Positions 7,526-58,371 of a stretch of DNA of 64,000 nucleotides are shown one piece after another. Location of the stretch: the sequence record NC_041975.1. The stretch is one strand, 5' to 3'. The notes beneath the pieces are model-generated. The model was not told where the DNA came from and did no database searches. It saw only the letters and a list, made by a program, of their open reading frames with translations. A program made the translations under genes and the position numbers. Within the stretch, counting starts at the first letter, position 1, and every line of letters starts with the position of its first letter.

Positions 7526-8086
7526 ATGATGTTTGATAAAATTGAAGGATTGGCTGATGTGATTGAGCTGAAGTACGGCTTGCTTGATATCACCTATCAC
7601 CGCGATAACGACAAAGACCTCTATGTCGATGTCTTTTATAAAGACACACGCTTGTCAAGCCGGCGTGACATGACCGATGCCCTGGACTACGCTTATATCG
7701 GTGTGCGGTTGTGTAACCCTCAGTTCGGTGCCTGGTGTTATGGTGCTGAGCGTGAGTTGGTCATGTCGCATTTAATGGACGCATTGAGAATGGTGGGTAA
7801 GCCTGCACCCAGGGCGGTTGAAGACTCACGGTTAAAGACAGGGATTCATCGTACCATTCAGCTACTTGCCGAGAACGGTAACCTGCATCCGAAAGAAGAT
7901 GATATCCGCATCACGATCCATCGTGCAGCACGAGTGGACTACGGTTCATCAGATACCATCGAAACAACCATCAGCATGACCAACCACGATATTACTATTA
8001 GTAAGCGACGGATTGAGTGTGTCAGTGGTGAGATGCGGGATTTACAAGCATGGGCGCGTAAGTTATATGCGAGACACTTTGAATAA
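7526..8086 (+). CDS. hypothetical protein
   Basis: 186 aa with a GAGGA RBS. Confidence 0.75.
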   Translation: MMFDKIEGLADVIELKYGLLDITYHRDNDKDLYVDVFYKDTRLSSRRDMTDALDYAYIGVRLCNPQFGAWCYGAERELVMSHLMDALRMVGKPAPRAVEDSRLKTGIHRTIQLLAENGNLHPKEDDIRITIHRAARVDYGSSDTIETTISMTNHDITISKRRIECVSGEMRDLQAWARKLYARHFE

Positions 8087-8500: not shown

Positions 8501-8551
8501 CGGCATATAGGCCCTCCATTACGGAGGGCCTTTTATGACATCTTTTTTTTT
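8501..8551. terminator. mirrored hairpin element at a convergent junction
   Basis: CGGCATAT-AGGCCCTCC-ATTAC-GGAGGGCCT-TTTATGAC, then a T-tract. Confidence 0.8.
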
Positions 8552-8563
8552 TGGTTTACAGCG

Positions 8564-8941: not shown

Positions 8942-9016
8942 GTGTGTATTTCCACTCATATAAGGGGAAGTTAAGAAAAGCAACCTGAGGGTCCGTCCGT
9001 GATCCCTCATAATGTA

Positions 9017-9481
9017 TTACTTCATACCGTCCAACTGCTTTTGAAGTTCCTTTAACTGACGGCTTGCATCCGGCGTCTCGGCGTCATGGTCTCTGATCGC
9101 TTCAATAAACGACTTCCGTTTGCAATAAGGATACTTCATCCATTTATCAAATGACAAACCAAATTTGCCCAAGATATCCGCACGCAGATATTCGAGCTCA
9201 TACTTTCGATACCCAACTAACGCCAGCGAGTCTTCCTGCTCGACCTGTAAGATTAACGAGAGCGGCGAGGTTTCCACGTTATGGTCAATAATCCCAAACG
9301 TGTCATCGTAAAGCTCTGTTAATCGAATTAGTGGATACTCCCAGTTCTCGGTAAGAAACGTGGGGTTTTCTAACGCGACATCCCAGGCATCGGACCGATC
9401 ACTTTCGGACAGACCGAAATCCCAATGGATTAGATGTCGGCTTGATCGAACGTCTGATTCAGTGTATTCGTCATTAGGGTA
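9017..9481 (-). CDS. -1-frame extension of the tail assembly chaperone (gpT/E'-like domain)
   Basis: The frame is open from 9529 to 9017. It has no ATG until the last codons, and the track's GTG at 9277 lacks a clear RBS. It is reached by a -1 slip at 9481-9488. Contains FGLSFDKWMKYPYCKRKSFIEAI. Confidence 0.75.
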   Translation of the reverse strand, partial: YPNDEYTESDVRSSRHLIHWDFGLSESDRSDAWDVALENPTFLTENWEYPLIRLTELYDDTFGIIDHNVETSPLSLILQVEQEDSLALVGYRKYELEYLRADILGKFGLSFDKWMKYPYCKRKSFIEAIRDHDAETPDASRQLKELQKQLDGMK

Positions 9482-11049
9482 AAAAAAACCCGTGCTACGT
9501 TCAGCGGGGTGTACGCAGGGAAGGTGTTGCTAACCAGCGGTTGACGCGCCTGGCAGTTCGGGCATTTCCAACGCGGTACTGCGACCACACCGACCGTTAC
9601 CCGGTTGATGAACTTGTTCAGCTCTTCAAAGAACGGTTTACGCATATCCGGGGTTGCACTGAATTGCTTCAGCAGCAATGCCACGTCATCGGCCGACTCA
9701 ACATAGTTGCCATCGTTGAACTCGATCTTGGTCACCCAGTGGGCGTAACCACGCATGGAGGACAGCGCTGCCTGTTTGTTGATGTGCTGCTCACGCTGCT
9801 CACGCGTCATGCTGTCGTTGAAGCTGTCGGTGATCGCTTGTTGAATGCCGTTGATCCAGGCATAACCCGCTGCATTCTTATCTTCGAGTGATGGCACCCG
9901 CAGATAGAACTTCACATCTTTCACAGTGATGACATTGTCTTTCATCACTTCAAAGCCGGTCTGATAGGCAATGACCTGCTCGACGGTACGGCCGCTGAAG
10001 TGAGACATGTGCGCACGCTGGGTTGGTGACAGGCGATTGTTGTCAATGATCGACAGACGAGAGACGTTAACTTTCGCTGCTTCAACATGCACACACTTCT
10101 TCGGATCGGCGGCACAGGCAGTAACCATGTGGTAGCCAGACTTAAAGCGTGCACCCAGGTAGGCGTTAGCGATCAGATCGAGATCCTGCTCTTTGATTAA
10201 CGGCAGCAGGGTTTTCTTATCGGAGACACCGATGCTGCTGTCGGTGACCATACCCAGCAGGAAGTCAGTCATGTGTTTACGCACCACGACATCCAGGTTG
10301 TTAAACACCAGACCGTTGGTACGACGACCGAGGATCGCTTTCTCAGCCATGATGGCGGTTTGCATATCCACAAACTCATCATCACCGGCAATCAGCAACG
10401 TAACCCAGATACCAGAATGTGGCAGCGGCAGATGGACATAGTCACCCATGTTCATCACACCACGTGCCCGCATCACTGCCTGTGGACCGGTCAGCAGTTT
10501 AGTACCTTCGGTACTGCGCTTCACTGGCGGGCGAGAAACACCCTGCACTTTGTTGCTGTCAAGCAGAATACCCTGCAGCCACTGCGCGCCATCTTGACGA
10601 ATGGTCAGGTTCAGACCAGAACGGTACGACAGGTTGGTGATGGCGTTACTGGCCAGGGATAGCCAGATCATCGCTTTATCAGCACCGTACAGACTGACGA
10701 TCTCTTTTAAGATCTTCTTGTCTTCGGTGTTGGTGTCGATCTCATTGATCAGCGCCGTCGCTGCATCGTAATCCTGATGCATAATAGACAGCACACCTTC
10801 CGTGCCGACATCCTCCATGGAATTCAGCTTTTCAATGATCGGGTTCTGATAGAGCGGATCGAACGCCTGCTCAACGGCTTCAACTTCAGGTGCTTCAGCT
10901 TCGCCCTGTTGGCCGGTTTCTGCTGGCTCGGGATCGGTGCCAATAGTACCAGTAGTCGCCGGACGGCCTGGATCAACTTCAGGAATACCAGAATGGTTTT
11001 CTTCAACAGGCTCTTGCTGTGACAGAATGGATGGGTTATCACCGGACAT
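9430..11049 (-). CDS. putative tail/baseplate assembly chaperone (T4 gp26/gp51-like; phiKZ gp77 position)
   Basis: DLDLIANAYLGARF...CAADPKKC...KVNV...FYLRVPSLED and C-terminal WKCPNC resemble the T4 gp26-type pattern. The N-terminus is acidic and disordered. Confidence 0.6.
   Translation of the reverse strand: MSGDNPSILSQQEPVEENHSGIPEVDPGRPATTGTIGTDPEPAETGQQGEAEAPEVEAVEQAFDPLYQNPIIEKLNSMEDVGTEGVLSIMHQDYDAATALINEIDTNTEDKKILKEIVSLYGADKAMIWLSLASNAITNLSYRSGLNLTIRQDGAQWLQGILLDSNKVQGVSRPPVKRSTEGTKLLTGPQAVMRARGVMNMGDYVHLPLPHSGIWVTLLIAGDDEFVDMQTAIMAEKAILGRRTNGLVFNNLDVVVRKHMTDFLLGMVTDSSIGVSDKKTLLPLIKEQDLDLIANAYLGARFKSGYHMVTACAADPKKCVHVEAAKVNVSRLSIIDNNRLSPTQRAHMSHFSGRTVEQVIAYQTGFEVMKDNVITVKDVKFYLRVPSLEDKNAAGYAWINGIQQAITDSFNDSMTREQREQHINKQAALSSMRGYAHWVTKIEFNDGNYVESADDVALLLKQFSATPDMRKPFFEELNKFINRVTVGVVAVPRWKCPNCQARQPLVSNTFPAYTPLNVARVFFTLMTNTLNQTFDQADI
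9481..9491 (-). other. slippery site for -1 ribosomal frameshift
   Basis: The minus strand reads CGG GTT TTT TTT ACC, giving an in-frame U UUU UUU heptamer 16 codons before the stop. Confidence 0.75.
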
Positions 11050-11066
11050 TATGCTTATCCTTACCT

Positions 11067-11534
11067 TTACTTTTTAGTGGGGTCGACCTGAACCGGGTCA
11101 TTGAGTTTGCTTGCTGCGCCAGCGGCAACCGCGTTAGCATGGGCGCTGTCTGACATGGTCAGAATGGCAGCACCGTGACGTTGCATCGCATCCAGCAATT
11201 TACTCTGCAGGACGATGTATTGTTCGTGCACACTGAGGAAGTCAGCGATGGTGCTGTCATGCAAGGCATAGCCGGTTTTGCCTTGATGCTGCTGCTTGAT
11301 CATCGGCAGTGTTTCATCGATCTCTTTGACTACAGCCAGCGCCGCTTCGATGTGCGAGCTTAACGCAGAGGGGTTTGGCTGAAAGCGAATGATGTTGGTG
11401 TTGACGGCCATGAGGCAAGTGTTGCTCAGCTCATTGCGCAAATTAATCGTATAAGTTGCCGCAGAATCCAGGTACTCCCAGAACTGATCGGGCTGATGGA
11501 CCTCTGGTGCGAGAGGCGGTTCATTGGTTGACAT
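11067..11534 (-). CDS. hypothetical protein
   Basis: 155 aa with an AAGGA RBS, cotranscribed with the chaperone. Confidence 0.75.
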   Translation of the reverse strand: MSTNEPPLAPEVHQPDQFWEYLDSAATYTINLRNELSNTCLMAVNTNIIRFQPNPSALSSHIEAALAVVKEIDETLPMIKQQHQGKTGYALHDSTIADFLSVHEQYIVLQSKLLDAMQRHGAAILTMSDSAHANAVAAGAASKLNDPVQVDPTKK

Positions 11535-20629: not shown

Positions 20630-20680
20630 CAGCATAAGGAGAGGCCTCGCGCCTCTCCTGTTTATGCCGTCTTTTTTTTT
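20630..20680. terminator. mirrored hairpin element at a convergent junction
   Basis: CAGCATA-AGGAGAGGC-CTCGC-GCCTCTCCT-G-TTTATGCCG, then a T-tract. Confidence 0.8.
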
Positions 20681-58233: not shown

Positions 58234-58371
58234 TGAATCTCTTTTTTTTTTAGTCTGGTTAAATATAGTGGATAGAGAATTAACTTGAATAACAAAAAAT
58301 AAAGCAAAGTAATATCAACGCCGGTAAGGGCTACAACAGTTGTTCTAATTTTCAGGCACGTAGCCTAGGAG

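Follow-up and report, generated by a model that had tools for sequence, protein, structure and literature searches.

A probable programmed -1 ribosomal frameshift in core gene cg18 of nucleus-forming jumbo phages

How can a conserved protein domain be made from a reading frame without its own start codon? The question is raised by gp271, a gene in a 64-kilobase (kb) stretch of DNA from sequence record NC_041975.1 (referred to as the window, meaning all 64,000 nucleotides), in which a second frame opens at a run of T close to the gene's 3' end. The window derives from Erwinia phage vB_EamM_Special G (Agricanvirus, a 273 kb jumbo phage), with 100% identity by megablast, and 16 related Erwinia phage records align to the region at 81-99%. 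gp271 is the ortholog of phiKZ gp077, RAY gp267 and Goslar gp081, which Table S3 of Prichard et al. groups as core gene cg18 and labels 'hypothetical protein' (PMC10299810). cg18 is a core gene of the Chimalliviridae, the phiKZ-like nucleus-forming giant phages (PMC10299810), and the annotations of PhiPA3 and 201phi2-1 equate the same family (phiKZ gp077) with 201phi2-1 gp136 and EL gp47. A first-pass annotation of the window had proposed a hidden -1 frameshift at this locus in a tail assembly chaperone, and had pointed to the phiKZ gp76/77 region as orthologous; the membership of gp271 in the phiKZ gp077/cg18 family bears out the latter.

The anatomy of the locus is simple (Table 1). Codons 520-524 of gp271 read CGG GTT TTT TTT ACC, and the 0-frame stop at 9432-9430 follows 16 codons past a run of eight T (T8, or U8 in the mRNA). 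The -1 frame, closed by a TAG shortly upstream, is open from the run for 154 codons, and none of the first 68 codons after the run is ATG, GTG or TTG. The first such codon is the GTG at which annotated gp270 begins, and the 20 nucleotides (nt) upstream of it hold no Shine-Dalgarno-like sequence. gp270 is the C-terminal part of the -1-frame extension and not an independent gene. The two frames give products of 539 amino acids (aa) without a slip and of 523+154 = 677 aa after one. Most of this had been described in the first-pass annotation, from the 539-aa open reading frame (ORF), the codons around the run, the distance to the stop, the TAG and the 154 open codons to the 86-aa ORF that starts at a GTG without a clear ribosome-binding site, and each element was reproduced; for the two products of a hidden, conserved -1 transition at the U-run, the comparative evidence set out below is much stronger than that annotation could know. 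The window contains five runs of at least seven T or A, and only the T8 run of gp271 falls within an ORF of at least 100 aa, the remaining four being intergenic. The arrangement of run and open frame at gp271 is far beyond chance.

Table 1. Features of the gp271 locus and its surroundings (positions are those of the window)
Feature	Position	Strand	Details
gp271, 0-frame ORF	9430..11049	-	539 aa + stop; phrog_4585 match, E 1e-188
U8 (T8) run, proposed -1 frameshift site	9481..9488	-	heptamer U UUU UUU at 9481-9487 in 0-frame register; codons V521-F522-F523
TAG closing the -1 frame	9530..9532	-	16 codons upstream of the run; from sequence reading and frame analysis
-1-frame extension	9017..9481	-	154 codons (9020-9481) + TAA at 9019-9017; phrog_13274 match, E 8e-122
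Dual-coding overlap	9430..9480	-	last 16 codons + 0-frame stop coincide with codons 1-17 of the -1 frame
Annotated gp270	9017..9277	-	86 aa, GTG start; only ORF reported in the -1 frame by a start-codon-based ORF finder
C496-P-N-C499 knuckle	9553..9564	-	aligns with CPxC of T4 gp26 (weak hhalign)
gp272, phiKZ gp078 homolog	11067..11534	-	155 aa; co-oriented upstream neighbour, 17 nt before gp271; phrog_10945 match
Hairpin and T-rich tail just past the extension stop	8973..9008	-	GAGGG...CCCTC, between extension stop and gp269 start

The mechanism that best answers the question is programmed -1 ribosomal frameshifting at the gp271 run, which is a probable source of the 539-aa and about 677-aa products. 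Most ribosomes would read gp271 to its stop at 9430 and release the short protein. A minority would slip back by one base on the heptamer while its two Phe codons occupy the P and A sites, where both Phe-tRNAs could re-pair perfectly in the -1 frame. The slipped ribosomes would then translate the 154 additional codons and yield a protein that shares its first 523 residues with the short form, followed by a conserved, mostly helical C-terminal domain that lacks a start codon of its own. Besides the anatomy of Special G, the locus displays conservation throughout the family, a coding signature in the start-less stretch and a -1 frame that opens exactly at the run; that the ribosome makes the shift is an inference, though the most likely one.

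The design was followed through 94 loci. Statistics are taken from the first 89, which comprise 17 curated phages (including phiKZ, PhiPA3, LucasX, Bacillus phage AgentSmith, JM-2012 and PCH45) and 72 IMG/VR loci; five more, from Goslar, 201phi2-1, an SPN3US-like Salmonella phage, OBP and RSL2, were examined on their own. Single-linkage clustering of the 89 loci yields 45 clusters at 50% identity and 18 at 40%, and the lowest pairwise identity is 17%. These loci share a phylogeny and their counts are not independent trials; the pattern is nonetheless present in every cluster. The first-pass annotation had suggested aligning orthologous loci for a slippery run at which the -1 frame opens, and a T5-T8 run is present at the equivalent position in 94/94 loci, phiKZ gp077 included. 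The extension is conserved as a protein, with a length of 149-192 codons across the family.

Relatives at several distances illustrate this conservation. AH06 (76% protein identity) retains the T8 run and the open -1 frame, in which no start codon occurs within 85 codons. Salmonella phage SA002, Erwinia phage pEa_SNUABM_37 and Proteus phage 10, at about 40% identity, carry a T7 or T8 run followed by ACC, with 16 codons to the 0-frame stop in each and 157-163 further codons in the -1 frame, and six metagenomic relatives (29-63% identity) have an equal arrangement. The design is also found beyond the reach of a tblastn search with the extension, namely in PhiPA3, LucasX, AgentSmith, Halocynthia phage JM-2012, pEa_SNUABM_54, PCH45 and phiKZ. 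A scan of IMG/VR with the family alignment returned 73 loci of 21-99% identity, 72 of them evaluable. Without exception, these 72 have the T5-T8 run 8-37 codons ahead of the 0-frame stop and a -1 frame that continues for 150-192 codons; in most of them the +1 frame meets a stop after anything from a few codons to some tens. In the five separately checked phages, what is annotated as the downstream gene amounts to the tail of the -1 ORF.

Indel errors classically arise at homopolymers, a risk raised in the first-pass annotation, and two frames meeting at such a run could reflect a base mis-called in assembly or the recent decay of a single ORF into a pseudogene. Yet the equal two-frame design recurs in independent genomes from laboratories in the USA, Canada, the UK, Korea, Egypt, Germany, Russia and Japan, as well as in dozens of metagenome assemblies. 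Also against artefact or decay stands the 0-frame tail past the run, which is conserved and fits the closing part of the family profile (residues 7-539 against profile positions 21-547 of 551). No fused in-frame version was found when the extension was searched by phmmer against 1.84 billion representative proteins: the 13 hits are all 72-186 aa long, the only relatives of the extension being short called ORFs, and none of them is a single-ORF relative. An artefact or a decayed gene is thus an extremely improbable explanation.

The boundary of the open frame coincides with the run. Within gene bodies, the -1 frame contains 4521 stops in 46917 codons (0.096 per codon, about one per 10). Between the run and the 0-frame stop of the 89 loci, it contains 0 stops in 1481 codons against 143 expected, and the +1 frame of the same interval contains 104. 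Upstream of the run, stops return to the -1 frame at the background rate, closing it at a median distance of 12 codons and, in 34 loci, within 6. Because the -1 frame is stop-free past the run and closed shortly upstream, it opens at the run and nowhere else. These counts bear on a second alternative, in which two separate proteins are made and the downstream ORF is initiated independently, whether at a non-canonical codon, at GTG 9277 or through termination at the gp271 stop followed by reinitiation. Reinitiation needs no stop-free -1 frame ahead of the 0-frame stop, yet precisely such a frame is present, and it starts exactly at the run.

Independent initiation agrees with existing annotation insofar as the downstream ORF is a separate gene in every genome's GenBank record. 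The annotators of Ea35-70 chose a CTG start, a TTG lies 8 codons past the run in 201phi2-1, and eight of the 89 loci have an in-frame start upstream of the run. In the remaining 81, however, the interval from the upstream -1 stop to the run is devoid of start codons. Over the survey, the first start past the run comes at a median of 37 codons with a range of 3-136. Orthologs that lack the run and start the downstream gene independently, which the first-pass annotation had taken as the outcome contrary to its proposal, were therefore not what the survey returned. Moreover, the annotated start of the downstream ORF differs in almost every genome and falls at non-homologous positions, so that the products range from 68 to 182 aa (86 aa from a GTG, 131 aa from a CTG, an overlapping ORF of 182 aa, and others of 68, 128, 106, 109, 80 and 153 aa). 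As to individual phages, the 182-aa ORF of RAY overlaps gp267 by 136 nt, and MadMel also has a 182-aa ORF. The phiKZ annotation is the 80-aa PHIKZ076.4 and that of Goslar the 109-aa gp082; in 201phi2-1, the 153-aa gp135 overlaps gp136 by 4 nt.

The stretch ahead of the first start evolves as protein-coding sequence. In 86/89 loci, the region aligned to a self-inclusive hidden Markov model of the family begins at least 10 codons before the first start. Conserved residues of the extension (Special G numbering) include H16 (79%), F22 (93%) and G23 (82%) in the start-less part, and later Y58 (93%), E83 (98%) and P118 (81%). When Special G is compared with AH06 over the start-less codons 16-67, differences at codon positions 1/2/3 number 4/7/19; of the codon changes, 17 are synonymous and 7 nonsynonymous. 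The two phages differ at 3 positions of the 48-nt dual-coding overlap, compared with 30 in the 156 nt just downstream. The -1 ORF thus opens at the site, lacks a start of its own and is under protein-coding selection. Such conserved residues and purifying selection inside a start-less part speak against two separately initiated proteins, an account that is very unlikely to be correct. Sequencing error, pseudogene formation, independent initiation and reinitiation were all rejected on the evidence given here.

The run itself has the properties of a programmed -1 site. In the window it forms a slippery heptamer of the type X XXY YYZ in the 0-frame register, and U UUU UUN is present in this register in 77/89 loci (54 UUU, 17 UUC, 5 UUG and 1 UUA). 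The run is T8 in 27 loci, T7 in 42, T6 in 12 and T5 in 8. Away from the site in the same genes, TTT makes up 42% of Phe codons and TTTTTT encodes 0/30 Phe-Phe pairs; the site is conserved in diverged relatives, and runs are avoided elsewhere. Heptamers of this kind are known to be shift-prone in Escherichia coli, where H_HH.U_UU.Y is among the most efficient patterns, U_UU.U_UU.U and U_UU.U_UU.C shift at >0.1% without a stimulator, and the tetramers U_UU.C and U_UU.U rank directly behind A_AA.G (PMC4066793).

The main rival to a ribosomal shift is transcriptional slippage, in which the phage multisubunit or the host RNA polymerase stutters on the T8 template and some mRNAs of altered run length join both frames. 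It is favoured by the length of the run, which is 7-8 T in 69/89 loci, and by the under-representation of UUUUUUU in all frames of E. coli genes, which has been blamed in part on transcriptional slippage (PMC4066793). Folding and Shine-Dalgarno tests that disclosed no ribosomal stimulator also count in its favour. The behaviour of jumbo-phage RNA polymerases in slippage, moreover, is not known to have been described, which leaves room for this reading. Against polymerase stuttering stand the 20/89 loci with only T5-T6. Such runs are short for efficient stuttering, as slippage homopolymers usually comprise 8-9 residues or more and act irrespective of codon register. The run at cg18, by contrast, is always in the register required for tRNA re-pairing, both in the 77 loci with U UUU UUN and in the shortened runs, most of which read G UUU UUY. 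This argument is not decisive because the register follows in part from the conserved Phe-Phe residues. On balance, transcriptional slippage is an unlikely origin of the longer product.

Several observations count against programmed ribosomal frameshifting. Heptamers are imperfect in 12/89 loci, 7 of which have G UUU UUY and 5 other forms that retain U UUU. Folding of the 45 or 70 nt downstream is on a par with that of windows elsewhere in the same genes (mean z about 0), and Shine-Dalgarno-like pairing upstream is barely higher than background (-2.7 kcal vs -1.9 kcal); neither type of stimulatory element looked for at programmed -1 sites, a structure 5-9 nt downstream or an upstream Shine-Dalgarno-like sequence, was therefore found. 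No trans-frame peptide has been observed, and protein evidence for the extension is limited to a single peptide of another phage, Goslar, from a preparation that contains non-virion proteins too. Finally, ribosomal slippage and polymerase stuttering give an identical protein and cannot be separated by sequence alone. A stimulator is not obligatory for programmed frameshifting, the lambda G/GT site being likewise without one. With none found at cg18, modest efficiency is expected.

One potential hairpin near the site was considered and rejected as a classical stimulator. Its arms are CCGACATC and GATTTCGG (about 9412-9440, minus strand), and the 0-frame stop lies in its loop; it lies 3' of the slip site at a distance of about 42 nt, and each arm consists of conserved codons. 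The hairpin belongs to the Agricanvirus-related clade and recurs in SA002, SNUABM_37 and two further loci (L007 and L011), with GAAGTC / GACTTC instead in Proteus phage 10.

An indication of efficiency comes from published label-free mass spectrometry of a Goslar virion preparation. The cg18 protein gp081 was represented by 24 peptides (area/mass 2.35), equivalent to about 22 copies, and gp082, which is the tail of the extension, by one peptide (0.336). The resulting extension/body ratio of 0.14 is a hint rather than a measurement, from a preparation that also holds chimallin and PhuZ. Judged by this single peptide, shift efficiency would be low, at roughly a tenth.

What the two products do is a separate question. 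cg18 proteins are 500-650 aa long and possess an invariant Cys4 set across the family, which in gp271 consists of C312 (10114-10116), C319 (10093-10095), C496 and C499. These residues presumably make up a zinc site to which two distant segments contribute. The window protein had no match in sequence searches of Pfam, NCBIfam and the PDB, and PHROGs returned only phrog_4585 and phrog_8054, neither with an assigned function. Searching PDB sequences with either piece or with the family profile likewise gave nothing, apart from Tako8 repeat hits that were rejected as spurious. A profile search of a large protein database recovered only the same 14 close relatives. AlphaFold2 models built from shallow alignments were poor (predicted local distance difference test, pLDDT, 45 and 48), and the PDB fold search was discarded as meaningless for this reason. 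A fold search with the extension found its own family only.

Diverse members of the family are more informative, and they point to the T4 baseplate hub factor gp26. The T4_baseplate profile PF12322 matches 2/38 diverse family members: one (L043) reaches 24.5 bits, which equals the gathering cut-off, with E 2.6e-5 over profile positions 107-213 of 219, and the other match is weak. The 'baseplate hub' family phrog_150, to which T4 gp26 itself is matched at E 6.7e-71, recognizes 7/38 members with a best E of 1.3e-6, always in the profile region of about 112-225. A Foldseek search of BFVD with the poor model retrieved first the protein's own family, next 'Baseplate protein' entries and after them 'Baseplate hub assembly protein, bacteriophage T4-like' at E 3.6e-5. 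These results suggest by transitive evidence that about 140 residues before the slip site are remotely related to the C-terminal half of gp26. The kinship has points against it as well. The window protein matches neither PF12322 nor phrog_150, even at E up to 10, and a direct profile-to-sequence comparison by hhalign with the single T4 gp26 sequence covers 16 columns around the CPxC motif, with a probability of 15.6% and E 0.0017. A search for relatives with T4 gp26 gave near-identical T4-like copies only, and no diverse gp26 alignment could thus be used for a better hhalign comparison. Any function assigned to cg18 would rest on remote, transitive homology, and both AlphaFold models are poor. 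The gp26-like character put forward in the first-pass annotation therefore stands remotely, through family members and the BFVD search, and does not extend to direct matches of the window protein.

Conserved -1 frameshifting is a feature of long-tailed phages, exemplified by lambda gpG/gpGT and P2 gpE/gpE+E' (Xu, Hendrix and Duda 2004, as cited in PMC5009743). If shifted as proposed, cg18 resembles these chaperone genes in several ways. A -1 shift late in the upstream ORF adds a second domain, the downstream frame has no independent start, the two products share their N-terminus, the long one is minor (as it would be in cg18), and the site is kept despite sequence divergence. The cg18 heptamer is U-rich, as the P2 site is according to the first-pass annotation. 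Membership in the lambda G/GT or P2 E/E+E' family, which the first-pass annotation had proposed, was not upheld. The G/GT proteins have no sequence or profile relationship to cg18: no Pfam or PHROG chaperone match was obtained for either piece from the window, nor for 14 and 38 relatives, and Foldseek matches to chaperones have E 0.16-1 with a poor model. The upstream part of cg18 has 539 aa and a Cys4 site, compared with about 100-150 aa in G/GT systems, and cg18 adjoins virion RNA polymerase genes instead of lying between the tail tube and tape measure genes. G and GT are absent from virions, whereas the Goslar cg18 protein was detected by mass spectrometry in the virion preparation that also holds chimallin and PhuZ; it is not among the 28 proteins modelled in the Goslar virion.

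T4 gp26, which has been proposed as a chaperone or cofactor in hub assembly (PMC9024508), offers a different comparison. In several family members, the C-terminal stretch of about 140 residues ahead of the slip site matches the gp26 family profile in its C-terminal half, both proteins have a CPxC knuckle near the C-terminus, and T4 gene 26 also gives two products from one gene. However, T4 gp26 has 208 aa, and its second product, 26', is initiated in frame within the gene, and the two products have their C-terminus in common instead of their N-terminus. No slippery run is present at the 3' end of T4 gene 26, and the following gene 25 has its own ATG, which overlaps the stop. Gene 26 is part of a hub cluster beside 25, 51, 27, 28 and 29, and cg18 lies outside such a cluster. 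In the T4 locus (L100 15803-16429), gene 25 is in the -1 frame relative to gene 26 with a TAATG overlap, the same frame relation as that of cg18 and its extension. Homology of the extension to T4 gp25 was considered and rejected, as no gp25 profile match was obtained and T4 gene 25 has an ATG of its own. Outside phage tails, E. coli dnaX (tau/gamma) and OrfA/OrfAB of the IS3 family are comparable in that tandem slippage on X XXY YYZ yields a fixed ratio of two products from one mRNA. They differ from cg18 in using A AAA AAG together with strong stimulators, namely a Shine-Dalgarno-like sequence upstream and a hairpin or pseudoknot downstream. The dnaX shift, moreover, shortens the product, whereas that of cg18 would extend it.

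Since the 0-frame C-terminal domain appears to be a remote relative of T4 gp26, the two forms of cg18 probably cooperate at a fixed ratio during hub or tail-initiation assembly, as analogs and not homologs of lambda G/GT. That the locus truly works like G/GT in hub or tail assembly, with two N-terminally identical products in a fixed ratio, is a tentative proposal drawn from this analogy. Equally speculative is the broader idea that recoding is ancient and family-wide in a gp26-like hub-assembly factor, so that cg18 and its trans-frame form would be the functional counterpart of G/GT for phiKZ-type contractile tails. On that reading, the logic of G/GT (two N-terminally identical proteins at a fixed ratio, one of them bearing an additional adaptor domain) would have emerged independently in the T4 gp26 lineage or persisted there beyond recognition, and a handle would be gained on the role of T4 gp26.

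Tail chaperone genes of phages are well-known sites of programmed -1 frameshifting. Searchable full-text literature contained no report of frameshifting for cg18/gp077, for phiKZ or for jumbo phages generally. A 2016 review of recoding mentions neither phiKZ nor jumbo phages, and no joined coding sequence is annotated in roughly 20 GenBank records inspected. As far as the searchable literature shows, -1 frameshifting in nucleus-forming jumbo phages and in cg18 is thus unreported. If it operates as proposed, >250 deposited jumbo-phage genomes would mis-annotate the locus, listing an arbitrary small 'hypothetical' gene and missing a protein of about 680 aa. Affected gene models would include those of phiKZ (PHIKZ077 / PHIKZ076.4), 201phi2-1 (gp136 / gp135), Goslar (gp081 / gp082), PhiPA3, RAY and SPN3US-like phages. 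cg18, a core gene without an assigned function, would gain a domain and a rule of stoichiometry, and would be tied to the poorly understood T4 hub factor gp26. The proposal is testable in existing proteomic, ribosome-profiling and RNA-seq data sets of phiKZ and Goslar.

The surroundings of cg18 are also conserved. In the window, gp271 is neighboured by gp272, gp273 and the virion RNA polymerase subunit gp274. The order of a virion RNA polymerase subunit (phiKZ gp080) and gp079, followed divergently by gp078, gp077 and the extension, is kept in phiKZ, PhiPA3, Goslar and 201phi2-1. The core-gene table of RAY places cg18 at gp267 and the lysozyme-domain giant tail protein (cg55) at gp162. gp272 and gp271 probably belong to one transcription unit. 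The hairpin with a T-rich tail just past the extension stop (Table 1) is a possible terminator closing the unit of gp272, gp271 and the extension. A simple terminator scan did not call this hairpin; AH06 has GAGGAGT...ACTCCTC at the matching place (L002, about 7741-7790), which amounts to a compensatory change.

Two further observations concern the window and the protein family. Three intergenic T9-T10 runs on the plus strand at 8543-8552, 20672-20680 and 58242-58251 have similar left contexts, TTTATGACATC, TTTATGCCGTC and CTGAATCTC respectively directly ahead of the run, and could represent a shared phage-specific terminator or promoter element. Residues 1-70 of gp271 (10840-11049, minus strand) are acidic, rich in Pro, Glu and Gly and predicted to be disordered (pLDDT about 25). 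The N-terminal region of the gp271 family varies in length, members of PHROG 8054 having about 140 additional N-terminal residues.

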